Below, in pieces: positions 14,731 to 51,899 of a DNA stretch of 64,000 nucleotides (position 1 is the first letter of the stretch; every line of letters begins with the position of its first letter). The stretch lies in contig NC_092356.1 in NCBI RefSeq assembly GCF_963676685.1, positions 5,952,001 to 6,016,000 on the forward strand, given 5' to 3'. The stretch is from Mytilus edulis (lineage: Eukaryota). The notes under the pieces were generated by a model, which was not told where the DNA came from, ran no database searches, and was given only the letters and a program-made list of their open reading frames with translations. Made by a program: the position numbers and the translations under genes.

Positions 14731-15561
14731 TTATTTATGTTGATATTTGACGTCAAAAGAAAAAGCATTTCCGTTAAAAATATTACAAACAAGAAGAATA
14801 TTTTCTTTTTTGTCATAATGAATTCCACACGGCCTAAACAATCCATCAGATTTAGTAAGAAGTTCTCTTTGATGTTTACCATCATCAGATACAACTATTA
14901 CAGTGTGTGCCGTCTTATTAGTCACATAGACATTCCCCTCATCATCTGTTGTTACACGAGTTAAATCTTGAAATCCATTCATTTTAAATTTCCACATTAC
15001 TTTTCCATCTAACGAGCAGCAGTATGTTGATGTTCTTTCTCTACAGACCAACCTGTCTCTGTGTACTGTAATGTCGAAGATATCGTCTGTAGGTAACGGT
15101 ATAGTACGTAGTACTTTACCTGTCAGGTCCATCACATGTATTATTCTCCAATCAATAACAACGTACAGGTTATTATCATTATATGATATTCCGTAGCAGA
15201 GACCACTGGTGTTGATTGTACTGGAGATAGAACGTGTAGATATATTTATTATCAGTATGGTATTGTTATGTCTACAGGATACTGCTACAGTGTTACTATC
15301 TATCTCTGTTATATAATATGGTTGATAGGATAGAGGAATGTAATGGATATCAGTACCGTCTGAATTACAAATAATAAGTCGTTTATTATTAGAGTCTGTA
15401 AACACCAATGTATTGCCTATTTGTATACAACTATCAATGAACTGACTTCCATCCTCTGACATCTTTATATTTATCTGTTTACGTAAAGTGACAGCAACAG
15501 GAAGGTTGTTTTTGACGGAGGCTTGATCATGGATGAATGTTTTTTCTTTGCTTGTTTCATT
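14731..15561 (-). CDS. Receptor-Roco exon 12 (terminal): NHL/6-bladed beta-propeller, similar to TRIM-NHL C-termini
   Basis: Blade repeats LVFTDSNNKRLIIC, CYGISYNDNNLYVV, VTTDDEGNVYVT, RPCGIHYDKKENILLVCN. The frame is open from 15561. The phase-0 acceptor position reads TAA rather than TAG; an in-frame CAG would start the exon at 15474. Linkage to exon 11 is inferred. Confidence 0.75.
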   Translation of the reverse strand, partial: NETSKEKTFIHDQASVKNNLPVAVTLRKQINIKMSEDGSQFIDSCIQIGNTLVFTDSNNKRLIICNSDGTDIHYIPLSYQPYYITEIDSNTVAVSCRHNNTILIINISTRSISSTINTSGLCYGISYNDNNLYVVIDWRIIHVMDLTGKVLRTIPLPTDDIFDITVHRDRLVCRERTSTYCCSLDGKVMWKFKMNGFQDLTRVTTDDEGNVYVTNKTAHTVIVVSDDGKHQRELLTKSDGLFRPCGIHYDKKENILLVCNIFNGNAFSFDVKYQHK

Positions 15562-16414
15562 TTAAAAAAAAATAAATTATGAAGTATCGAATTGATTATA
15601 AAAACAAGCGATTGCTTAATCTATAATTTAGTTTATCGCTTAAAGGAATTGAATGTTGTAAAACTTGTTTTGCACACTTTATACTGAACGTAATATTGAT
15701 TTGTTCAAGACCTCAAATTTTCTCTCGGATGTAAACAATTTAATTAAGTGTTATTTTCACTATTGACACATGAAGCTTAGCATAATTCAATGACATCATA
15801 TGTATATAGTGAAAGGAAAATTGAAAAAGTTTATAAATGACAGAGAGTCTTGTACTGGACACACCAATGCAGTGGAATACTATATGATTGGATTTATTTG
15901 GCCTTCCAATTTTAAATCATGAGCCCAAAAAAAATGTCAATATGATTCCTTTGTCCTAAACCTTAACCACGGACAGAAAAATGAACCGAAAAGGATGGAC
16001 TTTTCTTTACGAGTGTTTGTTGGTTGTTTAACGTCCAGTGACAAATAATTCGTGAATGTTCAGAACGAGAAAACAAATTAACAATACATACTACATTGGT
16101 AGGTAGGTTATGTAAGGGAGGCCGTGCAGGATTAAGGTCAGTGAAATATAGACTGCCACTGACAAACGAGAGTTAATTGGAAAGGGACAGAAATACCTTG
16201 TAAAATATCATATACGAACCCTTCGCAGAGCAGAGAGCATTGCACTATTAACACGAGTCTTAGATGTAATGTCCCCATTCTGACCGGACGTGGCTTGTAC
16301 ATCCCACACATTTAAACGAACGCTCTGCTTAGTCAAGAGTTTTACTGCCAATCGGAAGACATCTGATGTGACAAAAATTGAACATGCAATTTCACCAGAT
16401 TGTAAACATAATGA

Positions 16415-16675
16415 TATAAAAAGATGGGGTATGAGTGCCAATGAGACAACTCTCCATTCAAGTCAAACTTTGTAAAAGTAAACCATTATCGGTCAAAAAA
16501 CGACCTTCAACACGGAGCATTGACTCACGCCGAAGAACGAGTTTTAACGGGCCAAAACAATGACTAATTTAAACTATTCTGACAGGACAATCAACAGTCT
16601 AATTTTTATATAAAAAAAAAAACGGGAAACACTTAAAAAACGGGAACCACATAAAAAAACCGACAACCACTGTAC
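16415..16675 (-). repeat. SINE-like dispersed repeat (3' part)
   Basis: Reverse of ggagagttgtctcattggca.tcataccacatct, shared with copies near 40970, 46560, 47665, 59630 and 63140. Confidence 0.65.
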
Positions 16676-16843
16676 ATGTAAACAGGCCATTAATGTTCCT
16701 TTTTCGATTAGATATCTATATATATGCTGTTTTCTCTAATAATCAAATTAAGATGTAACAAAATGAAGAATACCACCATGGAACACAGATGAAGCCCCCG
16801 CTTTCATATGACGTTATAAAGGGTATAACTCGGAACGTGTTAA

Positions 16844-17553
16844 GGATGTACTCCTCTGAGGAGCCCACAATTTCTAGCATTAAACTTTTTTTTTTAAACC
16901 AGATTTTTTGGGTTTATATGACTGTAAAAAAAATATTCGTGAAGAAAAAATCATATGGTGGTGCGCTTCTTTTTTTTGCTACAGCCCTCTGAAAGTACCC
17001 AATTTTGAAGATTTTTCCATTTTTAATCAGTTTTTACCCATTTTTGGGCTATTATCGTGAAAAAAAATCACAGTTCCACAATTAAACTTTTTTTCATACT
17101 CTCAATAAAGATGAAGGGGACCAATCTGAATAAATTCAACTCACAAAAACTATAGGTAGGTGTTAATACAAGAAAGTTTTATCAGATTTTGATGCTTTTT
17201 CATGTCAAATTTATCATATTGACAATGTTTTTGATTTTTCTCTCTTCAAAGAACAAAATGCATATTTTTTCAACTCTCTAGTTATAAATGATTGAAAAAA
17301 ATACATATCTATGAAATTTGAAAAGAAAAAAATTATATGGAATGTTTATGTTTCTGGTAAATTATTTGTTTGTACCCCTCACCCATTTTTCTCAAAATTT
17401 CACTAAAAAAGACTGACTTGATTAGTAATAAAATTTGAAAATTTCATTACTTAAAAACTACTATTTTCCATTTATATCACAAGTTTTGGAAATAATTCTA
17501 GAACGAGATCTCAATGAGACTGAACGAGACTGAAATGTCAGAAGAATACATCC
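16844..17553. mobile_element. Kolobok-like MITE, 710 bp
   Basis: TIRs GGATGTACTCCTCTGA and TCAGAAGAATACATCC (14/16), with TTAA on both sides (16840-43, 17554-57). Purine termini favour Kolobok over piggyBac. Confidence 0.8.
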
Positions 17554-17591
17554 TTAAGACCTTGAATTCGGTACTGAATAAATAAATGATT

Positions 17592-18140
17592 AAAGAAAAG
17601 AGGGACGAAAGATACCAAAGGGACAGTCAAACTCATAAATCTAAAACAAACTGACAACGCCATGGCTAAAAATGAAAAAGACAAACAGAAAAACAATAGT
17701 AAACATGACACAACATAGAAAACTAAAGAATAAACAACACGAACCCCACCAAAAATTAGGGGTGGTGCTCCGGAAGGGTAAGCAGATCCTGCTCCACATG
17801 TAGCACCCGTCGTGTTGCTGATGTGATTACAAAATTTTAATCCGGTAAATAGTCTAATTCGGTAGGTCACATTCATGAAAGGGAAGGGAATTGTATTTAC
17901 GATGTAAGGAACATATCCGATATCATTTGTGAAACGGTTATTCCATAACGGTCAACCAACTCGTGATGGCGTCCGTAAAATTTAAGAAGGGATGATTTCA
18001 ACTTCACCATTTGGAACTCTTGGTTTAATAGCTTCCTTGTGAGCAGCAACCCTCTATCAAAAAAATCATGATAGAAAATGCAAACCCAGGGATATCGTAT
18101 CAATTGGGAGATATATACCCCGTATGCAGGTGCTGCTAAA
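17592..18140 (-). mobile_element. Penelope-like (Naiad-type) 3' fragment
   Basis: ORF 17897-18103 ..DRGLLLTRKLLNQEFQMVKLKSSL.KFYGRHHELVDRYGITVSQMISDMF plus the common 3' UTR. Confidence 0.85.
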
Positions 18141-21100
18141 ATGTTTTAATTATGAATACCATACTACGTGTCTTCCTGTAACGAAAACACCTGACATGGA
18201 GCAAGTTTTCCAAGGAAGGAGCTTCTTTACTGTGATTGAGAAAGCGGTACAAATGTCTCAATCTGAGGGTATCACCTCAAGACGCTTCAGGTGGCGCTTT
18301 GTGATGTATCAATATGCATCTACGTCAGATCGTGTAGGGCATCAAGACACTTTCTATAGATTTACCCTTACACCAATGTGTCCATGGAGTTGCACCCTTA
18401 CAAAAGGCTGAGTGTAATGTTTAATTACGCAGCCCCGTTCAGTCGAAATTGTAAATCTGAGATCTTGGTAAGTGAGGGTCATGTTCTCTTCGGTTTTAAA
18501 AACCTTTTAAGGATCTGCTTACCATTTTGAAGCTCATGACATCACCCAAATGTGTTCCATTGTTTGCAATCTTGTTCTATAGTTTTTGCTCGTATTTAAT
18601 ACCGTAATTAATGTTGCAGTATCTCGGGCTTCTGTTTTAGGTGAGACAGATTGTTATTGTATGAAAAATGCACAATGGACATCGCTTTATAATTCTCATA
18701 TGATGTGCATATAACAAATGTATAAGGGAATACATTTATATGACATTAAATGCATTATTTTTAATAAAGATTATGCCAATTCTACTGGTCTGAATGGGAT
18801 TAAATCGTCGTCATGGATATTCTATATTTTGAGTGTTTAAGAATATCCAGAAACCTATTGATTCGTTTCAGTTTATCAATTTCTTCAGGCTTTATACTGG
18901 TTTTCTTACTCCGCCACTAGCGTGGTTATTTTGATATCGACATTTCGTAGGGCATGTCTCCTCCTTAAAGTATGGTAAAAACAAGTAGGGCATTTACTTT
19001 GTATTTTTTTTTAAAAGAACTTTTTTTTATCGTAATGTTTATATCAAAACAAAACATAGCTTTACTAAATAACTGAAGGTTGATGTTATTGGATATAAAT
19101 GAATATGTTCTAGACTTAAACAAAGATAAACATTTTTAGCAGGCTATAAAGAATCAGTGACTTACGGGGGTGCCTTTGATTATGTACAATTCTGTATATA
19201 TATGGAGAGAAAAAAATAGAAAATGTGTAACAAAGTGGAGGTACTTTTCTTATTGTGAATGATTCTTAATTTCAATGAACTATTATATAATTTATTCAAT
19301 TACCAACAATATTCCGTGGATTATTTTCTGCATGCTCTTTATTTAATTTCGCAATTACCTGGAAAAGAAATGAGTAATTTTATTGAATGCAACACACGAA
19401 AACATGAACGATTAAACGATAACGTACGTGATGCAACTATATTGTCCTCTTTAATTTCAAATATACAATATTATCATTGACAAGCGATCTCGAGATAAAT
19501 TGTTCAAATAAACTATATCATACAGGGTTCATACTGATATACTTGAGTTGCTTGCATAGACAAAAGGAGGTTGTGTTTTTTCGAAGACCTAAAGACCGTG
19601 TCCTACAGAAGCAAAACCACTTACAGGTATTTATATTTAAAAACGAATTAACACCTCGCCACTTTGTCATCTGCATGGTCCGTGCCCGGAACAGTCGCAG
19701 AAGTTGCATTATGTAATTTTCCGAGACATAACCATGGTTCATCAACTTTCTATTTCAGACACTAGTGGCGTTTTTTTTTTAGAGTCTTAGCACCATAGCA
19801 GCAATTTTCCAACTTCACCTGTATATTTGATATATATTTCCCAACTCATTAGATATTTAATAGCTGCATCTGCTACTCAGACTTTATAAATCGTCAACAG
19901 TGTCTGGGCAGAAAGTTGATGAATCATCGTCATGTCAAAGAATGGATCTTCTTTTCCTAAAAAGGTTCATCGGAAGATACCAAGACTTCGTTGATAAAAA
20001 TACCGTATCAACTTAACATATAAAACATCATGGCCTTGAAGCATAGATGCTATGTATTGGCAGTGTTCATCATCTTGATAACGTGTTACAGTGTTCTCTT
20101 TATTTGACGTTGTTTTTTTTTTTTAACCTGTACTGTTCAGTAAATTTTTGGTATATACTTTTGGCTTTGCTATGTATTTATACAACCTGTCATTGTGCTA
20201 TGGTCCTATCTGTATTCTAGTCTTTCGTTTTTGCTCAAAAACATTGTCCATAAAGTGTCTTTATGACATTTCGGTTTTCTTTTGTTGAACTATAATATGT
20301 ATTTAACTCATATGGGACAAATGTGCCAAGTGAGCTTTTCTCATCGCATAAATGGAGTATATACATTTTGTACATCTGATAATATATACGATCGTTACAA
20401 TACATATTCATTAGTTACTACCATGTGGTGCTATCGTCTATTCGTTAGCTGGTGCCTTTGTTTTTGCAAGATTGAATATCACACCAATGTGATAGTAATT
20501 ATCACTTATAAAACTAACTACCAAAAGAAAAATTTCTGATACGTTTTGTTTTTTGATTTTGCCATGTGAGTATGGACTTTCCTAATTGATTTTCCTCTAA
20601 GTTCAGTATTTTTGTGATTTTACTTTTTACATAAAACATGTTCGTAGTTATCTTTAGTTTTTTGTGCTTATATGTTATAAGGATTTTATTTGAAAAATAA
20701 TATGGTTTCGACTATTTCGAATCGCTGTTACTTCGACAAATGGGGGAAAAAAAGATAACAAACGGCACCTTTGTCATGTATGGTGAATATCAACAATTAA
20801 TAATACGATTAATCAACGTGTGTTTTAAGAGTAGTCAAATTACTTTGAAAACCATTATCTGATGATAAAGAGTTAGGTTTTAACGATAAAGTGAAAAGCA
20901 AATTAATGAAAACAATGAAACGCAGAAGAAGAAAAAAAACAACAGCGAGATTGGATGGTTACACTATCAACATAGAAGTAAACTTTTGTTTAGAATTAAT
21001 TTAAAACACTAATATTTAACAAGTTTGATGTGCCATTAAACATGTAACCTGGACATGATGGATAAGCTATATTAGTTTACATGTTTTCAAATAATGCCAA

Positions 21101-21290: not shown

Positions 21291-22520
21291 TATGTCAGCA
21301 TGTTGTAACCAGGTTTTCTCTACGTCGTCTTTACTATGCATTTCATTATGTTCAGGACACAAGTAGTGTCCATTTTCACACATTTCACCAAGTTTCTTCA
21401 AGGTAATCCTGCCTTCTTTATTAAAGTAGTCACCATTGCTACATTTTGCTTTAATATCGTAAGATATGCTCTGTCTTAATTTTTTCTTTAACTCTTTTAT
21501 CTTTCTACATAGCTCTACTAAAATGGTGCTATATGTGTTATCCTCCACATCAATTAATTTCCATATGTGTAAGGCTATGGCATTCTTTGAGAAACATATA
21601 CATAACTTTCTAAGACCAGTTTTATCTAAATTGACCAATGTCTTTCCTCTATATAACGTTTTCTGCCTCGCTTTCTCACAGACTGTATATCTTGTGATAT
21701 AATAGAATAGAATGTGATTGAAATAAGCCAGGGGGAGAAATTTAAATTCAAGAATCAACCATGGTGAAAAACTAAAACTACTCCTTTCACCTTCAAACAT
21801 TTTCTTAATAATATCGAGAGAAGTCGATTGCTGTTTAATCATACATGGCATATAGTATGAATTTGGTATTAAACTAGAATCGTCCTTGGTATCTTTAAAC
21901 TTGGGTTTTACTAAAATATCAAATTTTTCCATTACATGAAGTATATGATTTTTATATTTTCCGAACTCTAAGTCAAGTTCTTTTTCAAAAAGCCTATCAA
22001 TTATGTCATCTGATAACTGTCCTGTTTTTTTCAGATGTTGCCAGTCAGTGGAGTTTACTATTGCATGATTTCGTTTGAATTCATGGTCATCACATACTAG
22101 GCACCTGAAACATTTAACCAACCACTCTGGCTGTAAAATGATGTACTCCCTAATGTCATCGAAAAAAATAATGTTCCCAATTTTATGTTGGTAAGTAAGG
22201 AAAGGAAGAAGTTCTTTTTCTTCGATGAAAGTTATTTGGGATAATTCCACAAAATTCTGGAATGACAAAATAGTCTGTTTCGATTCGTGTTTCAACACGC
22301 TTAACGCATTTTCTAGTTGAATCCACTGCGTGGGGAGCTCTTCCTCGAAAAACATCGTCTCATTTGCAACTTCATAAATTTTGTCTTTCAATTTTTTACA
22401 GTCGCGTTCAAGTAATTCTGTGTTAGAAATAAAATGTATGCCTCTATTGTGATTAGCTTTATCTTCACCTCCAAAAATTTCTTCAAATCTTTCGATGTAT
22501 TCTGTTTTCCTCTTTTCAAA
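21291..22520 (-). CDS. Receptor-Roco exon 11: end of ROC (G5, HFISN) and COR domain
   Basis: Acceptor (T)nAG|TTT, donor ATA|GTAAGT, 1230 nt, phase 0-0. Motifs EELPTQWIQLE, LTYQHKIGNIIFF, IILQPEWLVKCFRCLV, MEKFDIL, YYMPCM, FKFLPLAYFNHIL. Confidence 0.93.
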
Positions 22521-26342: not shown

Positions 26343-26497
26343 CTCTCCAACTGTTTTGTACTCATCAATATGAGTGCATACTACAATGACTGGTGGATAT
26401 AATCTATGTTTTGAATACCCTTTTGGTATAGTTGGTCTTATATCTGAAGAACTTGTATTTAAACAATGAATACTGTCAAACCAAAAGTCAATGTATT
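26343..26497 (-). CDS. Receptor-Roco exon 10: ROC G4 region
   Basis: ttttcag|AA TAC.. encodes EYIDFWFDSIHC...PPVIVVCTHIDEYKTVGE, donor GAG|GTACAG. 155 nt, phase 1-0; absent from the ORF track. Confidence 0.9.
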
Positions 26498-28654: not shown

Positions 28655-29269
28655 CTTCAATTGAATCAAAGTCTGTCTCATTTTCTATAGTAGTTAAGTC
28701 ATCCAATATATTTGTAACAAGAAGATAGATAGCATGTGGATTTAAAAACGTTTGATGTGTGGCATAATAGTCTTTCTGACCTGCAAAATCCCAGAGACCA
28801 CATTCTACTAAACTCTCAGATGTCATTTTGTCTTGATCTTTTTGGATTTCTAAAAGAATTTTATCCATTTGTTCGGTAATCTTTTTCTTCATATCGTCAG
28901 TGTTTACCAAATATTCGGCTCTTTTTATATCTCTTGACAGATCACCATCATTTTCGTATGGTATGTCAATTTCAGACTTTTCTTCAACGATGGTAAGATT
29001 GTCTCCTATGTTCACTTTGATTTCACCTGTCAATGAGTGTTCCACTGTATTTGAACCTGGTAAAGCTATACTTAGTTTATCTTTAGTATGAGATTCATTT
29101 TCTTGTTTTCTTCCAAATTTAGGCAACGATTCATTTGAAGTAATTGCTTCTGTTTTGTTGTTTTCTCCTCCACATGGAATTACTTGATCAGAAACTGGTT
29201 CGCTTTGCTTTGGTTCATTACGAACAGCCTCTTGTATCCTTCTCATTATTTTATTCCTCTCTGTTTCAA
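28655..29269 (-). CDS. Receptor-Roco exon 9: charged insert plus ROC G3/switch II
   Basis: tattacag|TT GAA, donor GAA G|GTGAG, 615 nt, phase 1-1. Contains CGLWDFAGQKDYYATHQTFLNPHAIYLLV. Confidence 0.93.
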
Positions 29270-35162: not shown

Positions 35163-36358
35163 ATTCAATTATAAGCCTGGTATCATTAATAACTATCTAC
35201 TGTAATCTTTGAAAAACGCACTATAAAACGTTTAATAGGAAGTATCATTGCAGGATTATTTTTCCATCATATTTATTGATTTTAATATTCTATTTCATTA
35301 TTTTGTTTATTATCACTAAAAATGAAAAATAAATCTTACTTTGTTATTATCGGATACTCAAATATCGTTAAACTATTCCAAATATTATGCTTTGATTTAA
35401 GTTATCTTATATTAGCTAATTTTGCTATATTTCTTCAATTTGTTCATTACATTGTACATTGTAACTACGAAAAAAACAAAACACAGTCAACCAGAATTTT
35501 ACTTATTTCTGCAAGCCTATTATTCTGTAACAGTTTACATTCAAAACAGAAATAAAACTAATCTCTCTATCAGAATAAAAAAAAAATGCAATAACAGGAA
35601 GAAATGCCTTCTCAATAAACAAAATACTGTCAGGCACTTTTCTATCGCTTGGATTATACGGCACATATATCCCAGCGATCTTTAAAACTATTGGTTTAGG
35701 GTTACACATATCATATGATTCACGTTTTAAGCAATTTGTTGCAAAATCATTGAAATAGATAGATTGCATTTTTTTGTCAAGCTGTTCAAATAAAGTTAAT
35801 ACATAATTTGGGCATAAACATGACATATGATAATTATTTAATACTCGGAATTCCCATGATTTTTTTTTTGTTTTTTTATGCTTTATGTTTTGCCTGGATT
35901 TTTGATATTTGTTTTATCATATGAAAATGTAATAAAGATTTCTCAGCTTTTTACAAATTTTTTTTTAACCAGTCCTGGTTTTCTAATTACAACAGAAACT
36001 ACATTTGACCAAACAAAAAATACAGGCAAAAGATAAGGTATAGGTACTTTAAGTTAGTCATGAACGCGCGATGCCAGTGTATCAAATTTGCAAAATTATA
36101 TTTAAAACAAATTTAATGAATAGTGATTCATTGTCACAAACATGCATATGGATAATTTATTTCACTAATCAATCTGAAAATTGTTAATGATTGGGCTTCT
36201 TTATCTTTTTATCCCTTTAATCAAAATAACTTGTCAAAATAGATCCACTCACTGCTTATAATATACAAAATGATATATACAAAATGAATTGTAGAATGAT
36301 GCAAATCCTTTTCATTTTGTCTTTTGATTTTTAATAGGGAGTAACAATTGTAACTAAC

Positions 36359-36589
36359 CTTTACCAATTACCCATTCACCATCAGTTGTTCTTATTTGGC
36401 ATTTTCTAACAATATCGATTCCATCCGTGCTATGTACTTTCATATTAGAATCTCCAACTAATCTACGTACAAGACTCGACTTGCCAACTCCTTCTTTACC
36501 AATAACCTGAATTCTAACATAACGTCTTATCTCTGTTCCGTCTTTTATTGCAGTTAAATGGTCATTTCTGTTTGTTACTTTCAGACTTT
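36359..36589 (-). CDS. Receptor-Roco exon 8: ROC P-loop and switch I
   Basis: ttgttag|AA AGT, donor AAA G|GTTAGT, 231 nt, phase 1-1. Contains VRIQVIGKEGVGKSSLVRRL and HSTDGIDI. Confidence 0.92.
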
Positions 36590-36963
36590 CTAACAATGAT
36601 ACAAAATAACACAATCAAGATATGTGTTTTGAAACTAGACTCCAACAGTTTTTGTAACATATTTCAAACAATATGACATGATCTCATTTACTATACAATT
36701 CATTATTCACACAATTTAGACTTTTCTGTTTGGTACATAAATTACGTAAAGTAGAGGCGAACAGTACATAAAACACAAGATATTAAACTACAACTGAGCA
36801 ACATGAATCTCACCATCAACTCGGATTTTATCAGGTGTTCCGTATGATTGAGCAGATCATTCCCCACATGTGGCATCTGTTGTGATGCTCACATTATTAC
36901 ACACTTAGTTAATTATCTAATTTGGTAGGTAATATACAAGGAAAAGGAGATTGAATTGTTATT

Positions 36964-37471
36964 ACAACAATTGGAAGATATCCGTCGTCATCTGTAAAAC
37001 AAATATCCCACGTCATAGTAGTCGACCTACTGACCCATAACATAGTCTACAACAATTGGAAGATATCCATCGTCATCTGTAAAACAAATATCCCATGTCG
37101 TAGTGGTCGACCTACTGACCCATAACATAGTCTACAACAATTGGAAGATATCCATCGTCATCTGTAGAACAAATATCCCATGTCGTAGTGGTCGACCTAC
37201 TGACCCATAACATAGTCTACAACAATTGGAAGATATCCATCGTCATCTGTAAAACAAATATATCATGTCGTAGTAGTCGACCTACTGACCCATAACATAG
37301 TCTACAACAATTGGAAGATATCCATCGTCATCTGTAGAACAAATATCCCATGTCGTAGTGGTCGACCTACTGACCCATAACATAGTCTACAACAATTGGA
37401 AGATATCCATCGTCATCTGTAAAACAAATACCCCATGTCGTAGTGGTCGACTTACTGACCCATAACATAGT
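36964..37471. repeat. 85-bp tandem array (6 units) derived from a Penelope-like fragment
   Basis: Units start at 36964, 37049, 37134, 37219, 37304 and 37389, contiguous with the diverged PLE 3' UTR at ~36760-36960. Confidence 0.9.
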
Positions 37472-37682
37472 TGTTGTGAGGTTTTCTTATGTGGTAAAGG
37501 CTTGACAGAATCTGTACACAAAGCATCGGACTGAAAATCTACGTATATCTTCACCATGCACAATCAAATGGATGTCAAACTTTGGCAATGGTTTAACAGC
37601 CGGTCGGAAAAAAGACTAAGCATGATTACATTGTTTTAAACCCAGTCATCCTAAGAGGTCTATATAATGTTAACGTACTTAC

Positions 37683-37739
37683 CTCTACAAAATTGGATTC
37701 CTGGCCGGTTAATTATATAAACAACTATACACACAGCAA
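37683..37739 (-). CDS. Receptor-Roco exon 7: second half of the TM helix and juxtamembrane region
   Basis: tattttag|TT GCT.. encodes FAVCIVVYIINRPGIQFCR, donor G|GTAAGT. 57 nt, phase 1-1. Confidence 0.82.
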
Positions 37740-39299
37740 CTAAAATAGATCAAATGTCACGTTTAGAATAAAAGTATGTAAATGATATTGTATTTCAGAA
37801 AGAAGCGTATCGCTTTTAGACATAAGCCGGATTTACTAATACTTTTCTATAAATTCATCTCAGCATGTTATCAATAATCAGTTAGATATAAATTATGTGG
37901 ACACACTTTTTTAGTGGGTCACTATTTATAACCAGATGTTGACCACAAAATGATAAGCTACAAACTTATATATCTCTGTGTCTTTCCTCCTGGCTTCAAT
38001 GTATTTCTGAACAATAAATATGAAGAAGAAAATTTGTTATCTTAAGAAAAAATATAATACGAATAATAATAGTATGCATATTTAGTTTATTGCAATATTA
38101 TTGACAACTTTACCTGTATTTATATGAAATAATTGTGTTCCTCAACTTTATTGTGTTGTCTTTCTTGTATTTAAACTTAAAACAGATGCAATAAACAATG
38201 ATTAAAAGTAATGATACATTTATACTTCATACATTTTTTATTAGTGTTTTACTACGTTAGATAATTTCTTTCAATGTTTTGAATTATTTCAAACTGATGT
38301 GAATTTAGGGAAAACAAAAAATTACCATAAACGATTAGACTAACCGTGACAAATTATCTGGTCTATGCCATTAACCTTTTTAACCCTTTTTAGCCCTCCC
38401 TTCTATTTAAATTTGGTATTTTTCGTAGTTTTCTATCAATTGTTTTTAATTTTACGTTGTTTTTTTTCTAAACCATATGCAAATAAATCTTTTCTACTTA
38501 AATGTTAATGGCTGCTTACTTTCAATCTCAAATTAACTAATCACAGCAAGAAATGATTTGAAAAAAAATCCAGAGATTTAAAAAAAAAAAAAGGAAAGGG
38601 CCTTTAACACTTCTTGTCCTTCAGTACTAGGATCTATGCATGATGGTGCCATATTCCAACATTTACAATGATTTCCAAAATTCCGGTATAACAAGAGGCT
38701 GTCATTTTGACTGCAACTCTGACGGCAAACCAGATTTCTTGCAGAGGTCGAACACAGAACAGCCAAGAAAGTATAGACACAACATTTTAGCTTAAAACAG
38801 TACTTAATTTGAATTGTGATTGAATATTTGACATATCATAGGTTTGTGACACAAAATCGGTGTGGTCAAATTAAACCATTGTGGTGACGTCAGCCTATTC
38901 ATTTACCGTGGATTCTTTTTCTAGAATCAACGCTTCCTAAATCCGTCGCTGAAATGGACTCACCAAATAATATTCTATTGTTTTCTTTATGTGCCTAATT
39001 TCATTAAGGTTGAATTGACTAATTTACTGATTTCTGCTCACAAATGGAATTATTTTAAAAACTTACCTTTAATTTTTGTAATCTATGTATGCCTTCACTG
39101 GGAAGCGAACCCGTCAATGAATTCTGTTAAATGTTACTGACTTCAACATATCGATGAAACCTCTGGGCTACCAATTGGTTACAATTTATATGTTTATTTT
39201 ATATATATAAATGAATAAATGATATACATCGGTTCAACATACACACAGGGCTTGTACCTTTATTTACTAATAATAGGCAAACGTACAATATAAGTTGGT

Positions 39300-41010
39300 A
39301 GCCACGAGGTTTCATGGTTAAGATTAATGAGGTAAAGTTTAGGTCTTGTCTGTTTAGGTTCGAATCCCTGAATTCTCTGGTTTTCCAGTTTTTGTTCTTG
39401 TTTTGTATGTTATTGTGGATATTTTGTGTAATAAAAGTGAGTTTAGTCGTTTATAATCGGATTAATGTTGGCTATTCCACGTCCACTTGTATTTCTGTCC
39501 ATCTGATGAGTTAAGCCTGTTTCAACTGATTTTTATAGTTCGTTCTTATGTTGTACTGTTATACTGTGAGCCAAAATTTGTTCCTGTGAAAAAAGTTCCT
39601 GTGGAACTAATATCACAGGAAATATGTTCTGGGGGAACTTTTTTCATAGATAATTTCAATATAATTTGTTCCATCTCTATGAAATAAGTTCCACACTTTA
39701 CCTAGTGTGAAATAAGTACCGGAATGGTGAAATTTGTTCCTTACTTAGTGAAATAGGTTCCAGGTTTATGAGATTTGTTCCTTAACTGGTGAAATAAGTT
39801 CTGGGTTTGTGAAATTTGTTCCTCATTTGGTGAAATAAGTTCCTAGTCTGTGAAATATGTTCCACTGGTTAAACAGGTTATCTTATATACTGAACATTTG
39901 TCATCAATGAGTTTAAAGTTATCATTCAAGTGCATTATACAAATAAGTATAATATATTGATAATATAACAAATGAAAAATGTAAATCATCCAATAAGAAT
40001 CTTGTGGACTATAGCAAATGTTTAATAATAAACGTAAAAATATCAAACTGACAGTCCCACTTTGAGCCAGAAAAGAGTAGGATAAGAAAAATCTTTCAGA
40101 AAAAAATAAAGTCAAAGATGAACATGAACATATGAACTAATTTGAAAAGGACAAAATAACTGATTAATGATTCCAAAAGACACGAAGAAACAAAAGACAC
40201 ACTCTTTTGAAACTGTTCCATGACAAGTACATGTATGACTAGAAACAGGGCCATGACAGTTAACAGGAACCAAGGAGGAATACCACATATAACATAGATT
40301 TAAATTATGATAAATTATCATCCCTTTATCCTGTAGAACATGAAGAAAATGTTTCACTGTGCAATATGTTGCAAAGGTACTTATTTCAGTGAAAATAGGT
40401 TTGAGAAGAAATTATTCATTGATTTCTTTGAAAAATGTACATATTGATTTTAAACTAATATCACAGGAACTTATTTGAAACTTTTAATATTAACTCGAAC
40501 AAAATTCATGGAGCTATGATATTTGTTCCGGAACTTATTTCATATTTAGTCAAAAAATTAGTTAAGGAACACATTTTACAGTTCTGGAACATATTTTCTA
40601 TGATATAAGTTCCTGCGGAACATATTTCCTATGAAATTTGTTCCGCTATGTCACGCCGGAACATATTTTGTGTTACAATACCACTGTCCCAGGTTAGGGG
40701 GGTTGGGATCCCGCTAACATTTATAACCCCGCCACATTATGTATGTATGTGCCTGTCCCAAGTTAGGAGCTTAGCTGTAATTCAGTGGGTTTTTTTTTGT
40801 TCAATTTTTACATAAATAAGCCGTTAGTTTTCTCGTTTGAATTGTTTTACATTGTCATTTCGGGGCCTTTTATAGCTGACTATGCGATATGGGCTTTGTT
40901 CATTGTTAAATGCCATACGGTGACCTATAGTTATTAATTTCTGTGTTATTTTGGTCTCATAATAAGAGTTGTCTCATTGACAATCATACCACATCTTCTT
41001 TTTTTATATT
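39300..41010 (+). mobile_element. Near full-length tRNA-headed SINE-like element, interrupted by a TIR element
   Basis: B-box-like GGTTCGAATCCC at ~39357. The body resumes at 40678 with aaccccgccacat..tgcctgtcccaag and ends in the common tail cataccacatcttcttttttt. Confidence 0.6.
39565..40677. mobile_element. Non-autonomous TIR element, 1113 bp, Ginger-like termini
   Basis: TGT...ACA ends, imperfect ~20-bp TIR, 4-bp TSD ATAC (39561-64, 40678-81) and many subterminal GAAATWWGTTCC repeats. Confidence 0.8.
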
Positions 41011-41479
41011 CCACATGTTTGAAATAAAAATGATTACATTATTTTTGTCCATTATTGTTTTATAAATTAATTTAATATGATTTCATCTGTTTTACTGCAT
41101 AATTTTACAAATGTTAATTCGCAAATTCCTATGCTAGAAAATCGTTATGTGCCTAGAATTAGGCTTCGTGTTAAAAAATTTCGGAAACCCACTTATTATA
41201 TGCACTATATGTATCTTTTTCCATTTTCAATTTTAATAGAAATGAGTCCGAATAGAACTTATTTCGTATTAACAGATAATATTCAGATGCCTGATAATAT
41301 GAAGATCTTAAAGGGCAGACGTGTTGTGTAATAATGTATTTATATTTTTAAACATTTATTTGTGATATTTACTTTTATTTTTTATTGTAATGGATCATGG
41401 TTATTTAAACTCACTTACAATACCTTCTAATTAAGAATAGGCGTTAATTTTGAAAAGACATTAACACAATAGTTTAAGT

Positions 41480-41582
41480 TATAGATACAATGGATAAGCG
41501 TTGATTCATGAAAAACAAACCATTCGCCCTCCGGGCTCATGGTTTCTTTTTCAAGAATCAACGCTTATCCATTGTATCTATA
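41480..41582. repeat. 103-bp palindromic MITE-like hairpin
   Basis: Perfect 28-bp outer arms (TATAGATACAATGGATAAGCGTTGATTC and its reverse complement) with continued imperfect pairing; TA ends. Confidence 0.88.
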
Positions 41583-42056
41583 TCACAGAACTAATTTTTA
41601 TCAAAAAACAATTTGATAACCAGAAAACAAAAAATAATAATGTCCCCTCCAAATGATAATCTCCCTTTTTTCTTCAAAACAATACAATGTGTTAAGCTTC
41701 TCTTCCATCATACCCATTATTGTTTGACAACATCATAATTATGTCATACTTTTAAGTGTGTAATAATTGCTAATGTGCAAAACAATTAACAAACTACATA
41801 CTATAAATTACATTAATAGCTTAATCCCTTTAACATATTAACATAAATTATAATATAGTTACAGTTACTGTAATAGTTTTTTTTTTTATTTTAACGTTAG
41901 CAAATACATTCTTCTAAAAACCAACATCAATATTTTGTTGGATATGGTTTTTGAAATTAAAAGTACAATTATGTTAAGTTAAGTAACAGTTAATATAGGA
42001 AATGATATTTCCACCTCCGGCAGTGAGTTTCAATTATTATAGGAAATTATTATTTC

Positions 42057-42127
42057 CTCTCCGGCAGTGAGATTCGAACACACGATCTTTCCAACTTGGG
42101 TTAGTTCAAAATACCCCTGCACCACTG
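42057..42127 (-). repeat. tRNA-like relic (SINE head or tRNA pseudogene)
   Basis: The minus strand reads cagtggtgcaggggt...GTGTTCGAATCtcactg (A/B-box-like), with no convincing cloverleaf. Confidence 0.4.
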
Positions 42128-42719
42128 TCATCGTTTGAAAATTGTTAAAATTGAAGAACTGAATAAGTCTACTTCTTAAGACGTGCAAAAAAACACATAT
42201 GAAGATTCACACCCAGCTTGTTTTAAAAAAAAAATGTGTACAGATGACACATTTTTGTTGCCAAACGATGATTTTTACGCAAATATAGAAGAAATCCACT
42301 CATTAGACTGTCATTTGTATTGAAATATAAATGTTCCCTCATTCAAACACAAATGTTTTCAATTTTAGCATACATGTACCACTACACTTACGAAATTATG
42401 TTTTGTACATTGTAACACATATTACAACTTAGCTAAAACAATCAGGATATTGTAGTGAGTGTTGTCTTTTTTGCGATAAAATCTGTAAAAAATGACTACG
42501 GATTTTTAGCGTATTTCAAGTTTGTGATTGCGCTGATACACTAAAACTACACATTTAACTACCGTACAAGAAAGAAGTTTTATTTTAATACTATTCTTCA
42601 AAAACTCACTACACACTTATTAAAACAAAATCATAATTCCCCTAAAATGAGCAGTTTGCTATGCACTTCTTCATGTCTTTTTTTTTTAAATATTCTTTAG
42701 AATTCGAAGAAGAAAAACA

Positions 42720-42968: not shown

Positions 42969-43016
42969 AGTATGCTAATAACAATGTCACTATCGATATG
43001 GCTGCTTTGTTGCGAT
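42969..43016 (-). CDS. Receptor-Roco exon 6: first half of the TM helix
   Basis: aattgtag|AT CGC.. encodes NRNKAAISIVTLLLAY, donor T|GTAAGT. 48 nt, phase 1-1. Confidence 0.8.
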
Positions 43017-44482: not shown

Positions 44483-44553
44483 TTGTAGGATAGTTTAGGT
44501 TGTATTTGAAGCTGTCAAACTCGATGATCTTTATTGTCCGTGAACTATTAAAC
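44483..44553 (-). CDS. Receptor-Roco exon 5: ectodomain stalk
   Basis: (T)nCAG|G TTT.. encodes MFNSSRTIKIIEFDSFKYNLNYPT, donor A|GTACGT. 71 nt, phase 2-1. Confidence 0.75.
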
Positions 44554-46029: not shown

Positions 46030-46084
46030 ATTTCTCTTAAGTAAGGAAGTCTTGTCATTTTCGTGTCATAATAACATTTGATGT
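46030..46084 (-). CDS. Receptor-Roco exon 4
   Basis: (T)nCAG|AC ATC.. encodes DIKCYYDTKMTRLPYLRE, donor AT|GTAAGT. 55 nt, phase 1-2. Confidence 0.78.
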
Positions 46085-46967: not shown

Positions 46968-47273
46968 CTGTCAAATCGTTCGTTTTGTTGTATCGATTGT
47001 TTACGAGATAACAGGAGCAATCTTCAATTAAAGGATCGCAGTAACACTTATTTTTCGGTATCTTGACAAACGAATATCTTCTATCGGTATTGCAAATACA
47101 TTTTCTATCGACTGTAGTGTTGCCGTCGTCATAAGTTTCCTGACCTAAGCTGTTACAAAGAGTTTTTTGAAAGGTGCAGTCACTGTGCCCAATTGTGTCA
47201 AAATTAAAAGGCTGATATCTAGTTGCACTGCATGTTGCTCTGTTTAAGTTCGGCTGAAAGACGTATTTATGTC
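46968..47273 (-). CDS. Receptor-Roco exon 3: Cys-rich TNFR-like ectodomain
   Basis: ttgcag|GA CAT.. encodes ..TCSATRYQPF..SDCTFQKTLCNSLGQETYDDGNTTVDRKCICNTDRRYSFVKIPKNKCYCDPLIEDCSCY.., donor G|GTAAAG. 306 nt, phase 1-1; absent from the ORF track. Confidence 0.9.
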
Positions 47274-47299
47274 CTGCAAATATTAAGTAAAAGAAGTGC

Positions 47300-47705
47300 C
47301 TGCCAATTGATATTTTATCGTGTGTTTTTCTATGTTGTTATGTTATGTTATTGTTTCAGAAAAAGGGAGAAGGTTTGGATCCATCAAAAAGGTTTAATCC
47401 CGCTGCAAATATTTGCACCTGTCCGAAGTTAGGAATCTGATGTACAGTAGCTGTCGTTTGTTTATGTAATTAATATGTGTTACTCGTTTCTCGTTTTTTT
47501 TTATTCTATATAGATTAGACCGTTGGTTTTCCTGTTTGTATGGTTTAACACTAGTAATTTAGGGGCCCTTTATAGCTTGTTGTTCGGTGTGAGCCAAGGC
47601 TCCGTGTTGAATGCCGTACATTGACCTATAATGGTTTACTTTTTTTAAATTGTTATTTGGATGGAGAGTTGTCTCATTGGCACTCACACTACATCTTTCT
47701 ATATC
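47300..47705 (+). repeat. SINE-like dispersed repeat
   Basis: Same body and tail organisation as 39500-41010. Confidence 0.65.
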
Positions 47706-48005
47706 TAGTAATACTTTACATTATAAGTTATATTTCGCTACATTTGTCACCTCTTAATTCAGGTACATGTTATTAAATACGTGCACAACCAAGTTATTTA
47801 TTTACAGTGAAATAAAATAATTAATAAAAACGACTATTATTCATTGAATAAACTTTCTTTTTAATTGTTTATCAAACATTTTTATTATATGAAAATACAG
47901 TTATTGTTTAACATATATGACATGTATGACATATTGGTCATATGTTGTGCTCAAAACAATGCTAATATTAATAGTACAACTATCTATACATCTAAAAAGG
48001 CTTAC

Positions 48006-48177
48006 CAGGACTTAAAAGTCTAGGTCTGTTACACGTATCATTGTATACATTTACTCCAAAAGTTACGTTAAATAAGCAAGTATAATTTCGTTCAGGCTTA
48101 CACATGGATTTTGCCCGAAGATTCCAGTGTGCCTGCGATGGACAAGTAAAGTTGTATGCTTCATTTAAGGATAACAT
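48006..48177 (-). CDS. Receptor-Roco exon 2: end of signal peptide and N-terminal Cys module
   Basis: tttgtag|ATG.. encodes MLSLNEAYNFTCPSQAHWNLRAKSMCKPERNYTCLFNV..TCNRPRLLSP, donor G|GTAAGC. 172 nt, phase 0-1; three N-x-T sequons plus NDT. Confidence 0.88.
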
Positions 48178-48497
48178 CTACAAAAAAGATAAATATCCAT
48201 CAATAATTCAAACAATACGTCAATTAAAATTGTAATTTTTCGACACAAACGCACATAGTCAATGGTTTGTGAGCACGTTGACCTTATCAAAAACAGCAGC
48301 CTTAAAAATGTGTATTAAGACGTACATTGAGTCTAGATAGCACTCGCCAATAATGTTGCTAGGCAAAATCAAATACGAAATTGTACAAATAAATGTTATA
48401 TTACTTTGCTGTTACAACATTGTGGAAAGTGTTTTAAATTAAGATATTTCTCTCCCATTCAAGCTCTGATTCCTTGCCTTACGTTCGGAAATACTTT

Positions 48498-49345
48498 AAA
48501 AGAGAGGCGAAAGATACCAGAAGGACATTCAAACTCAAGTAAAAAAACTGACAACGCCATGGCTAGAAAAAGACCAACAGACAATCAATAATACACAAAA
48601 CACAACATATTAAACAAAAGACTAGGTAACACGAACCCAACAAAAACTCCAGAAGGGTAAACAGATCATGTAAAACGGTAATTCCATTACGGTCAACCAA
48701 CTCGTAATGCGTCCGTAAAATGGAAAAAGGGATGATTTCAATTTCACCACTTGGAACTCTTGGATTAATAGTTTCATTGTTAACAGCAACCCTTTATCAT
48801 TGAAATCATGATAGGAAATACAAGCCCTGGAATATTGTATCAACTGGGAAATATATACCCCGCATGCAGGCGCTGCAGAAATGTTGCTACATAGAAATGG
48901 AAAGTTCACAATTGGGAAACTGAAATCATCTCTTTCGTCGAAAAGTTTTGTTTCAACCGACTCTGATTGTCAGTTTCAATAACTATGTAATTCAAGGTAT
49001 GAGGTATACCTAACTGTTATCTGGTGTATCCTTTATCTCAAGTTCGATCGAATGGATGCATTCAACATAGTCACCAAATTTTGAAATATTTAGTGATAGA
49101 ACATCATCTATATAAATTGTAGCAGAAAGTACAGTTTAAGGATAATTCAAACTTCTTTGGCTACTCCTTTTTTTTTGTGAAAAAAGCAGGACCAACCCTT
49201 TCAATTGATCGTTTAGTTTGGAATGGAGAACACTTGTATAAAGTGAAATATGTTTTATCACTATTGCAAGATGAAAGAGTGTTAGATTATAGGTTTTGAT
49301 TTTTTTAAGTATCCTTATCTGATTCACGCCACCTCTAGAATAGGC
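48498..49345 (-). mobile_element. Penelope-like RT copy with internal deletions
   Basis: VNFPFLCSNISAAPACGVYISQLIQYSRAC, YIDDVLSLN; the upstream part matches 24590-24740. Confidence 0.85.
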
Positions 49346-49768
49346 CTTTATTTATTACGAAACGGACAGGTTTCGTCGAAATATGCATCTGATGATCGTC
49401 AGTGTGCCAAAAAAAATCCCCTCTAACCGTTGCTAGGGGCGTCTTAAACTGGCAGTGAACTGAGAGTGTGTTTGCTTTTGCTCCATTGAAAGACCTCACT
49501 GTGACTTTGAGATGAAGAACAACAATAACGGCGATGCTTCATTGCTTTTTTTTTCTTTTTTGCTGTGCAATACTGATTTGATGTCATCAATGCATCGTGG
49601 GATTATCCCATATCCTTTCTTTTCTACTACATTAAAATAACTATTTGTTCAAAATTTAATATTTATGTAACAACTGTGTGGTAAACTTCCTTAACCGTAC
49701 TCTGCAACCCAAAACAAGACGGCGATACAGAAAAGAAAACATATGTGTCAGATTTAAATGATATATAC

Positions 49769-49801
49769 CTGAAGGAGAGTCAGTAGGATAAACATGTCCA
49801 T
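49769..49801 (-). CDS. Receptor-Roco exon 1 (coding part): start codon and signal peptide
   Basis: ATG GAC ATG TTT ATC CTA CTG ACT CTC CTT CAG|GTATAT encodes MDMFILLTLLQ, phase 0 into exon 2. An acceptor ttttctttttag before 49833 implies an upstream UTR exon. Confidence 0.75.
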
Positions 49802-51899
49802 GAATTTTGTTCTTCATTTATAATCTATGCCACCTAAAAAGAAAAACATTAAACAAATCTAAGGAACATAAATTGAAAATCAAATCGGAAAGTCCCTAAT
49901 CATTGCAAAATTCAAACGAAAAAACACATGGACAACAACTGTCATATTCCTGACTTGGTACAGGCAGAAAATGGTGGATTAAACCTGGTTTTACAGCGCT
50001 AAACCTCTCACTTTGTATGACAGTCTCATCATATTTACAGTGATGCGTGAACTAAAGAGACATAATAAATAAAATAGTCGAAATATTGGTACAGCAGTCA
50101 TCATCGTGTTACAATTTTAAAAGAAACAATTGCTGTGCGCGTCTGACGTCAGAAAATGTATACGTCACATATTTGTATCGTTGAATGTTTATACAAACAA
50201 TTTAAAATGTTCACATGGGCAATGTTAGCATACAGGGTTAAAAAAATCAAAAGTATGTAAGAATTAATTTCAGAAATAGACCGAGATTTAAAATAGCCAA
50301 AAGTTCTATAGAATTTATAAGAATCCACAAATGGTTCATTCCACTACGTGATTAAATAATAGTGTTTGGTTCAACGTATTTTCTAATTTATAATAGAAAT
50401 ATAATATAATGACATATTATAGAACAATAACATGCTGACAGGATCTATTAAAATACAGTCACGTTTTAAGAACAAAAGAAACAAAACGTTGCATATACAA
50501 AACACACCTTATCTTCAAGTTATTCTTGTTAAGATTCTACTTTTGAAAATGCCTGTACCAGTTGTTGTCCATTCGATGTTGATGCGTGCTACAGTGAGCT
50601 GTCGGGAGAATTGTAGAATAGTTTGTCTTATTATAATTTTAGTTAAAATAGTAAATGTGTGTAACAAAAAAATAATCCGGGTATTTTGACAATTTTCACA
50701 ACAACTCTTGTTTGGTATTTGAGTTTTCTGACTTGTAAGTGCTTCTTTCAAATTATCATTTGAAAAAAAAGAAAGGTTTGTGATCTTATGTTTATAAAGG
50801 CTTTTCGATGTGAAATATAGGAAAAGTACATATTTTATTAGAGAAATACTGGATAAAGTTACAAACTATAACATAAAATATGTTCACATATGACATTTGA
50901 CTATGAAACCTACAACAGAACAAAATATGTTTTCTTAATGCATTTAAAAATACAAGACGTTTACATAAAGATCAATACAATTATTTTAATCGACTCAATG
51001 AAAAGATCACAGTTCAACACTTTTTGTTACTAGGATAGCACTTTATTAATACTATGGTAAATAGTGGTGTTTTAAATGTGTATTATTATACCGGTTATGT
51101 TCGTCATACTTCGTAAACATTTGAAATGTATATAGCGTCTATTGACAAACCGTCTTTGTCATCTTGTAGAAAATTAATCCTACGTCAGTGCAGTGAAACA
51201 CATTTCGGGTCATAATTATATATCATGGGTGTTTCAAAGCACCATTATTTTTTTTTTATTTTGTGTTTCTATAAAAAAAATTGGAAACATGAGGTTATAT
51301 GGTTACTAAAGCTTGTACACAGGTAAAAACGAGGTGAACATTTGATTGGTTAACTTCCAGTGATGGTTATTTTCTTATATGCAATGAATGTTATGCGAAA
51401 TTTTGTCTATAGTACTTGACAGGATGAAACTTTACCCATAGCTTTATTTGAAACAAAGATAAATTATGCACAATTGTTTTAAAAGTGCAAATTTAACAAA
51501 GACTAATAGGGGAAAATCATTGGTGGTATTACACGTTATTAACAAATTTTACATCAATTTTCTCAAAATCAGAAATATAATTGTGATAATTTGATTTATT
51601 TCTAATCATCATTTATTTCCTTCCTTATCATGATTCTTAAAGAATACAGAACTCACATCCAACAAGTGACAACGGGTAGCCTGCTTTGTTATTTAATAGT
51701 GTAGTTTTAAAACAATATTTGAAAGTGTGTGAACACATTGCAAAAAGAGTTTAATTGTCTTTATAAGTTGACATTTTTAAGACTAACATGAGGACATTTA
51801 CAATCATATCATTTTGTGAAGATTGAGTTAACATGGTTAGTGAAATCATGTAATTGTTGTTACATTTTCAAAGATATTAAAATGATTTAAGATATATAA

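Follow-up and report, generated by a model that had tools for sequence, protein, structure and literature searches.

Gene structure and reading frame

The window analysed here is a stretch of 64,000 nucleotides (nt) from the Mytilus edulis chromosome contig C13 (5,952,001-6,016,000). Its minus strand carries, between window positions 14731 and 49801, a gene of the ROCO family, in which a Roc GTPase domain is followed by a COR domain. We judge it probable that the locus is one intact, transcribed M. edulis gene for a type I single-pass membrane protein, the topology of which we infer. Exons were joined in silico for the frame test and searched singly, and whole-protein steps used the RefSeq protein XP_071146866.1 (P0176; "uncharacterized protein [Mytilus edulis]", 1011 amino acids). 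The coding exons are as follows.

Exon 1 (coding part), 49769-49801, minus strand: start codon and first 11 residues, signal-like; GT donor; residues 1-11 of P0176
Exon 2, 48006-48177, minus strand: remainder of the signal-like segment, then the initial Cys-rich part; 4 Cys and 4 N-X-S/T; P0176 residues 12-68, 100% identical
Exon 3, 46968-47273, minus strand: central Cys-rich module of the ectodomain; 9 Cys, of which 8 are invariant among 32 paralogues
Exon 4, 46030-46084, minus strand: ectodomain stalk, 1 Cys; P0176 residues 172-188, 100% identical
Exon 5, 44483-44553, minus strand: membrane-proximal stalk; P0176 residues 190-212, 100% identical
Exon 6, 42969-43016, minus strand: first half of the predicted transmembrane helix; P0176 residues 214-228, 100% identical
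Exon 7, 37683-37739, minus strand: second half of the predicted transmembrane helix and basic juxtamembrane residues; joint to exon 8 seen in three runs
Exon 8, 36359-36589, minus strand: N-terminal part of ROC, with G1 GKEGVGKS and G2 STDGID; Pfam Roc
Exon 9, 28655-29269, minus strand: acidic, predicted disordered insert in the ROC beta2-beta3 loop, then G3 DFAGQ; Pfam Roc
Exon 10, 26343-26497, minus strand: C-terminal part of ROC, with G4 THID; T571 and D574 invariant in the family alignment
Exon 11, 21291-22520, minus strand: G5 SN, COR-A, COR-B, a C-x27-C-x2-H-x3-H motif, then a long helix; Pfam, Foldseek
Exon 12 (mini-exon) and short-form end, 19291-19358, minus strand: exon 19358-19304, TGA 19298-19296, AATAAA 19296-19291; tblastn with P0002 and P0183
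Exon 13, 14731-15545, minus strand: putative beta-propeller (approximately 270 amino acids, NHL/PQQ-like) and stop; in phase with the mini-exon

Exons 1 to 11 join at AG...GT boundaries with matching phases into 2973 nt, or 991 codons, containing no stop. In the joined frame the signal-like start lies at residue 1, the transmembrane segment at 217, GKEGVGKS at 278, DFAGQ at 485, THID at 571 and ISN at 612. The frame put forward in the original prediction is thereby borne out, and it is identical to residues 1-991 of XP_071146866.1 (100% identity, same exon order). A chance origin of the frame is excluded, because the 410-codon COR exon alone is stop-free in DNA of approximately 31% GC and because the frame matches an independent public model.

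Evidence for one spliced gene

Contigs from public runs were mapped on window positions 36350-42349 (6,000 nt) only, and the raw RNA run X24 was also examined. The joint between exons 7 and 8 (36589|37683), at which 1093 nt are skipped between GT..AG sites on the minus strand, was found in runs X1, X2 and X3, in a single contig per run; the runs belong to three studies. The entire 57-nt exon 7 lies on the short side of the joint in two of these three runs. The X3 contig (record 17, 357 nt) extends 55 nt past exon 7, corresponding to the 48-nt exon 6 plus 7 nt, and 14 nt past exon 8. Thus, the exon with the second half of the transmembrane helix is spliced to the P-loop exon in real molecules, at a junction that the original prediction had singled out for checking. 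A protein-database search with exon 8 for fragments bridging exons 6, 7 and 8 found none, and its best match was only 78% identical.

Could the ectodomain and transmembrane exons on the one hand, and the ROC-COR exons on the other, be two neighbouring genes wrongly joined by annotation? For the closest relative, the M. trossulus model XP_063418376.1 (P0001) has another short first exon joined to exon 8 and no ectodomain, and the older M. edulis model P0002 likewise has none. However, the window has no coding sequence for MKTQHTK, with which the P0001 model starts. The exon 7-8 joint occurs in three runs, with one contig reaching 55 nt further upstream, and both parts recur at 28 colinear paralogous loci and are joined in models from five species and several pipelines. 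An annotation chimera is thus very improbable, and the claim of a single spliced gene, which the RefSeq model also supports, holds.

A mini-exon and two possible 3' ends

The original prediction joined the COR exon directly to an in-phase NHL exon. The in-phase exon exists, but the direct join is wrong: a 55-nt mini-exon (19358-19304, AG/GT, phase 0 in and phase 1 out), located by tblastn with relatives, lies between the two and contributes 18 codons plus 1 nt. The propeller exon begins at 15545, with an AG acceptor in phase 1, and not at the ATG at 15462. The resulting 13-exon model has 1280 codons and a single terminal stop. The same mini-exon to propeller connection is made in the RefSeq protein of a tandem paralogue, XP_071146864.1 (P0183, 1309 amino acids).

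XP_071146866.1 itself reads two codons past the mini-exon donor to the TGA at 19298-19296, giving a protein that ends in ...NIVGN. An AATAAA at 19296-19291 overlaps this stop codon. A stop and an overlapping AATAAA just past the donor make it plausible that a short, propeller-less form is produced by intronic polyadenylation immediately after the mini-exon. The window gene has an open, in-phase exon for the propeller originally proposed, but the RefSeq isoform stops before it and the Pfam NHL profile stays under its threshold.

The putative propeller measures approximately 270 amino acids, a size fitting six blades. Pfam NHL scored 14.6 bits on this exon, below the cut-off of 20, and two other propeller families, Mala_s_1-like and SdiA-regulated, scored just above their Pfam cut-offs. 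A sequence search of the PDB matched designed 'Scone' propellers of PQQ/NHL type (E 3e-11), PknD (E 8e-4) and the NHL domains of TRIM2/3/71 (E approximately 0.02). Exon 13 would encode an NHL/PQQ-like propeller of six-blade size, NHL-like only under the Pfam threshold. The matches to TRIM-NHL proteins (TRIM2, TRIM3, TRIM71, Thin) and PknD are weak to moderate and concern the six-bladed-type propeller exon; unlike TRIM-NHL proteins, the mussel protein has no RING or coiled-coil TRIM core and no B-box match.

The ROC-COR GTPase

Assignment to the ROCO family is solid on both defining domains, Roc and COR. Pfam Roc (PF08477) matched exon 9 with 30.3 bits (cut-off 27) and exon 8 over profile positions 1-46 with 24.6 bits (E 3e-5), and COR-A (PF16095) matched exon 11 with 57.6 bits (cut-off 35.3). 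The G motifs are complete (GKEGVGKS, STDGID, DFAGQ, THID and SN), and G278, G283, K284, T302, D485-G488, T571 and D574 are invariant or nearly so among 32 relatives. An alignment of the 32 relatives was used to build an AlphaFold model of P0176, which places ROC at residues 266-611 and COR at 619-1003, with a predicted local distance difference test score (pLDDT) of 75-90. In Foldseek searches, this model matched the Chlorobaculum tepidum Roco 6hlu with E 9e-17, and matches to the structures of C. tepidum Roco, LRRK1, LRRK2 and M. barkeri Roco2 (6hlu, 3dpu, 8fo9, 8e05, 4wnr) ranged from E 1e-10 to 1e-16. The M. barkeri Roco2 match had a TMt of 0.72, and COR alone (3dpt) a TMt of 0.68. The structural alignment with the RocCOR of 6hlu, 3dpu and LRRK1/2 spans 523-565 columns. 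All ROC motifs and the COR domain of the original prediction are therefore present in frame, and no kinase, LRR or death domain was found in the gene; for kinase and death domain this is in line with what had been claimed.

Monomer-dimer behaviour of ROC-COR is established for the C. tepidum Roco and LRRK2. By analogy, the mussel ROC-COR may have GTPase activity, switch with its bound nucleotide and dimerise.

The mussel protein shares with the solved ROCOs (C. tepidum Roco, M. barkeri Roco2, human LRRK1/LRRK2) the tandem of ROC with COR-A/COR-B and the P-loop, TxGID, DFAGQ and THxD motifs. Unlike them, it has no LRR, ankyrin, kinase or WD40 domain, and carries instead a signal-like segment, a Cys-rich ectodomain, a predicted transmembrane helix some 35 residues before the P-loop, a disordered ROC insert of approximately 105 amino acids and a C-terminal NHL-like propeller. 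To our knowledge, all characterised ROCO proteins are soluble and are brought to membranes by partners.

Two features within and behind the GTPase deserve mention. The beta2-beta3 (interswitch) loop of ROC contains an acidic, Ser/Asn/Lys-rich insert of approximately 105-140 amino acids, encoded in exon 9. Its residues 342-446 have a pLDDT of approximately 22 and are predicted to be disordered, and an insert of similar length and variable sequence is present in relatives in the family alignment. We know of no such insert in LRRK2 or bacterial Roco structures. A near-invariant C-x27-C-x2-H-x3-H motif (C941, C969, H972, H976), followed by a long helix, lies after COR-B and before the mini-exon (21291-21500; residues 940-1003), and this region may form a small zinc-binding linker module. 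At the corresponding place between COR and propeller, the relative P0021 has a Pfam B-box match; a B-box was considered for the window gene and rejected, since Pfam gave no such match there.

The N-terminal part and the membrane

At the N-terminus, Met-Asp is followed by a 13-residue hydrophobic stretch and then NEA|Y, an arrangement conserved in relatives and signal-like by hydropathy. It may be the signal peptide originally proposed. The sole hydrophobic segment elsewhere in P0176 lies at residues 217-235 (Kyte-Doolittle mean 2.71 over 19 amino acids), where AlphaFold2 (AF2) predicts a helix at 214-238, so that the single transmembrane helix of the original prediction is retained. Between the two, the ectodomain has 195 residues with 14 Cys, an even count, and 7 N-X-S/T sequons, and is Cys-rich as claimed. 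Sequon density is 3.6 per 100 residues on the N-terminal side of the transmembrane helix and 1.0 per 100 beyond it. A linker of only approximately 35 residues leads from this helix to the P-loop. A single predicted transmembrane helix thus parts an extracellular-type domain from the ROC side, a layout common to approximately 35 relatives.

The N-terminal part would accordingly be extracellular or luminal, and its sequence is equally compatible with the cell surface and with an organelle lumen. The protein might therefore be an organelle-membrane anchor, with its N-terminal part in the lumen of the ER, Golgi or endolysosome and ROC-COR-propeller acting in the cytosol in trafficking or organelle surveillance. 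The signal, transmembrane, Cys and sequon features would be identical for luminal and extracellular domains, the conserved ectodomain described below fits a constant sorting or retention role, and the nearest structural relatives are LRRK1/2. LRRK2 acts on organelle membranes after recruitment by Rab proteins. We regard an organelle anchor as unlikely, if worth keeping in view.

The label "TNFR-like", which the original prediction gave to the ectodomain, found no support. No Pfam family was found on the ectodomain, and exons 2 and 3 had no TNFR_c6 match at E ≤ 1. Fold tests used a model of exon 3 alone, in which the first 37 residues are of low confidence and residues 38-95 have a pLDDT of approximately 85; in the full-length P0176 model the ectodomain has a pLDDT below 35. 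Foldseek found no significant fold match to the exon 3 model (best E 1.3), and VIA-align gave a best Z of 3.0, mixed among CCP, EGF and TNFR modules. The top non-significant Foldseek rows were mostly CD40, DcR3, TNFR1, RANK and HVEM. With no Pfam match, Foldseek E above 1 and a VIA-align Z of at most 3, "TNFR-like" is not supported, and a fair description is a Cys-rich extracellular-type module of unassigned fold class. It resembles the TNF-receptor superfamily in being a small disulfide-rich extracellular module, but its Cys spacing is one of C-x-C pairs rather than the TNFR pattern, and the protein has no death domain. A search of the ESM Atlas with residues 1-250 gave one unnamed mollusc cluster at 0.84, which serves as a lead only. 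The 155-residue database fragment P0152, tried as a stand-in for the ectodomain, was dropped as its C-terminal part was misaligned.

Some members of the family (P0021, P0163, P0165) have Ig I-set or fn3 domains. These were rejected as evidence for an extracellular part, as they lie between the transmembrane helix and ROC, on the predicted cytosolic side, where they recall the intracellular Ig/fn3 domains of titin/obscurin type.

A large modular family in Mytilus

The M. edulis genome holds at least 150 paralogues of exon 3, spanning 38-92% identity, and at least 103 of the COR exon. These counts are lower bounds, and the two exon lists were paired by eye. At 28 loci, a COR exon is preceded at a distance of 10-47 kb by an ectodomain exon of the same strand, where approximately 0.3 would be expected by chance, and approximately 10 further loci have such a pair 50-100 kb apart. 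The reverse order was seen at none of the loci among the paired lists.

Database proteins were also searched for the same architecture, as the original prediction had suggested for bivalve proteomes. A similar ectodomain occurs in 21 of them, every one of which has Roc and/or COR-A; they stem from several annotation pipelines and from five species (M. edulis, M. trossulus, M. californianus, M. galloprovincialis and M. coruscus). Approximately 35 database models have a transmembrane helix shortly upstream of the P-loop. A profile search returned 116 relatives, nearly all from Mytilus, with only distant matches from Potamilus and Lingula. The window gene belongs to a large Mytilus family, with dozens to hundreds of copies in five species, in which exchangeable exon modules surround a ROC-COR switch. 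Some relatives are cytosolic: XP_071124080.1 (ROC-COR-propeller), for example, has no signal or transmembrane segment.

Other relatives join the same ROC-COR to further domains, namely Ig I-set, fn3, CARD, caspase, BIR, fibrinogen-C or C-type lectin, and ROC-COR seems to serve widely as a hub module in mussel genes of immune or death type. Proteins with caspase, CARD, BIR, fibrinogen-C or C-type lectin fusions include P0205, P0222, P0230, P0051, P0220, P0226, P0206 and P0265.

In the tandem paralogue XP_071146864.1, the COR exon lies at C13:5,814,655 and the ectodomain exon at C13:5,912,485 (loci L002, L034 and L035; 5,814,655-5,912,787). This paralogue has the same exon order and spans approximately 100 kb, against approximately 35 kb for the window gene. 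The M. trossulus relative of the paralogue, XP_063418376.1, has a different first exon in its model and no ectodomain.

Full-text literature searches turned up no account of a ROCO that combines a signal peptide, an ectodomain and a transmembrane helix. The suspected novelty therefore stands in a limited sense: the proteins are already public in RefSeq, unnamed and labelled 'uncharacterized', and what is new is the recognition of the family and its architecture.

Modules with different histories

Substitution rates at non-synonymous (dN) and synonymous (dS) sites were estimated pairwise by the Nei-Gojobori method. Between the window gene and its tandem paralogue, whose flanking introns are 94-97% identical, dN/dS was 0.37 for ectodomain exons 2-4 (0.33 for exon 2 alone) and 0.48 for the COR exon. 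For the propeller exon, dN was 0.137 and dS 0.064, a dN/dS of 2.1 (bootstrap P(dN ≤ dS) = 0.003; P = 0.01, Fisher test). A comparison of four genes (the window gene and those at C13 5.81 Mb, C13 6.32 Mb and C13 0.81 Mb) gave the following ranges.

Propeller exon: dS 0.06-0.16; dN/dS 0.96-2.6
Ectodomain exon 3: dS 0.25-0.56; dN/dS 0.2-0.47
COR exon: dS 0.62 to saturated (35% amino-acid identity); dN/dS 0.22 where measurable

When the window gene is compared with the more distant genes, the intron directly before the propeller exon shows only 66-69% identity. Identities to the window gene are also mosaic: P0167 and P0170 reach 72-80% in the ectodomain and 71-75% in the propeller and only 30% in COR, and P0173 reaches 75-85% in ectodomain and COR and only 36% in the propeller. 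Differing dS and mosaic identities mean that each module has had its own history. This points to exchange of exons, or to conversion confined to exons, among the genes of the family. By these estimates the cytosolic propeller, not the ectodomain, is the diversifying module, and the ectodomain is under purifying selection. Thus, the ectodomain is not obviously a variable sensor.

This bears on the classical view of a receptor, in which the ectodomain senses a ligand, ligand-induced clustering alters whether ROC-COR is monomeric or dimeric and with it the GTPase cycle, and the propeller does no more than pass on the output. The type I features, the linker of only approximately 35 residues from transmembrane helix to P-loop, the monomer-dimer ROC-COR cycle of the C. 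tepidum Roco and a repertoire spread across genes (at least 150 ectodomain-exon paralogues at 38-92% identity) would all suit such outside-in signalling. However, the ectodomain was under purifying selection in every tested pair (0.2-0.47) and the amino-acid excess lay in the cytosolic propeller, no ligand-binding fold was recognised for exon 3 with Foldseek or VIA-align, and homodimer prediction supplied no dimer evidence. We hold outside-in reception in this classical form to be a minority possibility, somewhat on the doubtful side.

Proposed function

We propose that the signal-like N-terminus would direct type I membrane insertion and leave the Cys-rich ectodomain outside the cell or in a lumen, with ROC-COR as a nucleotide-dependent switch held approximately 35 residues from the membrane. 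The conserved ectodomain could feed in an unvarying signal from outside the cell or from a lumen, or could determine localisation. The fast-evolving cytosolic propeller could offer a variable face for recognition or for binding of partners, much like the repeat sensors of NLR and TRIM proteins. A conserved ectodomain with a diversifying propeller would fit a membrane-tethered, NLR/TRIM-like intracellular sensor equally as well as outside-in clustering. The switch might serve innate immunity or cell-death-type signalling. Such a role is likely, as suggested by the relatives with CARD, caspase, BIR or lectin domains, by the copy number, and by the abundance of COR, B-box and propeller domains in dispensable mussel genes. 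COR is among the 30 most abundant domains in those genes, in which B-box and six-bladed propeller domains are also abundant (PMC7653742, Suppl. Table S48).

Comparable families have been described elsewhere. Brown-alga LRR-ROCO genes combine exon shuffling with diversifying selection on a repeat module and are proposed to be immune receptors (PMC11378527), a proposal for which a review cites Zambounis 2012 (PMC4104024). They resemble the mussel genes as a large clustered family whose repeat module is shuffled by exon and diversifies, but their variable module is an N-terminal LRR, whereas that of the mussel genes is a C-terminal single-exon propeller. According to the passage of the same review on Ectocarpus, some ROCOs of this alga have a C-terminal part resembling transmembrane proteins (PMC4104024); unlike in brown-alga ROCOs, the putative membrane anchor of the mussel proteins is N-terminal and comes with an ectodomain, and the lineages are unrelated. 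In animals, the relevant passage on Aplysia proposes a 'novel GTPase TLR signalling cascade' for LRR/TIR proteins that include ROC-COR (PMC9334734), and that on the sea-anemone immunome lists LRR-ROC-COR-TIR genes (PMC5094078). These passages, too, present ROC-COR as a module in lineage-specific candidate immune genes, but the fusions they describe carry LRR with TIR or Death, and the same passages describe no Cys-rich ectodomain, ROC-adjacent transmembrane segment or propeller.

The mussel proteins are a new domain-architecture variant of the ROCO proteins within a large lineage-specific family, with a putative function. They show features of NLR, TRIM and brown-alga ROCO families: large copy number, exchange of exon modules, CARD/caspase/BIR/lectin fusions in relatives and a repeat domain of recognition type with dN/dS above 1. 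We offer only tentatively the broader reading that dozens to hundreds of membrane-tethered ROCOs in Mytilus, exon-recombined and with a conserved extracellular module and a hypervariable, positively selected cytosolic propeller, form a new class of animal innate-immune receptors, either transmembrane receptor-GTPases or membrane-anchored NLR-like sensors. If true, they would offer a naturally occurring model, of interest for LRRK2, of how ROC-COR is activated when bound to a membrane. For LRRK2 it is a central question how the ROC-COR cycle is governed by attachment to membranes and by dimerisation, and a natural ROCO with its GTPase approximately 35 residues under a transmembrane helix would be a simple test system for it. 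Such proteins would also add a candidate receptor class to the mussel immune repertoire, and the family may help to explain the frequency of COR domains among presence/absence-variable mussel genes.

Several points weigh against an expressed, propeller-bearing membrane protein of this kind. The RNA nature of runs X1 to X3, which carry the exon 7-8 joint, is presumed; the exon 6-7 junction was not sighted directly and draws its support from the 55-nt contig extension, position 42969 being outside the mapped interval of 36350-42349. Exons 7 and 8 received no reads at all in the raw RNA run X24, so that expression is low or restricted. Hydropathy, together with a modestly confident AF2 helix, is the basis of the signal peptide and transmembrane calls. 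The putative splice from mini-exon to propeller in the window gene is supported by phase and the paralogue model, and the gene has a RefSeq isoform that lacks the propeller. Homodimer prediction with two copies of residues 615-1003 gave no verdict and is evidence neither way. The dN/dS values come from only four related genes in non-independent pairs, and gene conversion can distort such estimates; at three further paralogue pairs (C12 24.4 Mb, C14 47.5 Mb and C13 5.0 Mb), no comparable propeller was found within 10 kb downstream. Finally, the family was found only in Mytilus, by searches whose results were saturated with Mytilus proteins.

Two of these points, the truncated isoform and the zero coverage in X24, could also mean that the window gene is a redundant, decaying copy, dispensable, heading for loss and with a functionless product. 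A 94%-identical tandem paralogue lies approximately 90-160 kb away on the same chromosome, and COR-domain genes are abundant among presence/absence-variable mussel genes, both of which would suit decay. However, the 13 exons all have open frames and intact splice sites, every G motif is intact, spliced contigs occur in three runs, and the dN/dS of 0.35-0.48 for ectodomain and COR against the paralogue points to constraint after duplication. We therefore consider decay improbable, and retain the reading of an intact, transcribed gene.

Repeats in and around the gene

Intron 6 contains an interspersed repeat (39350-41150) at which summed contig depth was very high in all four runs, reaching up to approximately 1.6e5. 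Many internal joints within it skip approximately 1.1 kb (39554-39564 to 40678-40700), and the repeat looks like an abundant, transcribed transposable element together with a deletion derivative. In intron 7, between the transmembrane and P-loop exons, six tandem copies of an 85-bp unit (96% matches) occupy 36963-37471. Downstream of the gene lie three satellite-like arrays (5398-8613, 10078-11402 and 12510-13422), built respectively of 119 copies of a 27-bp unit, of 53-bp units and of 30 copies of a 30-bp unit. The array of 30-bp units is the source of long spurious repeat open reading frames at 12428-13556.

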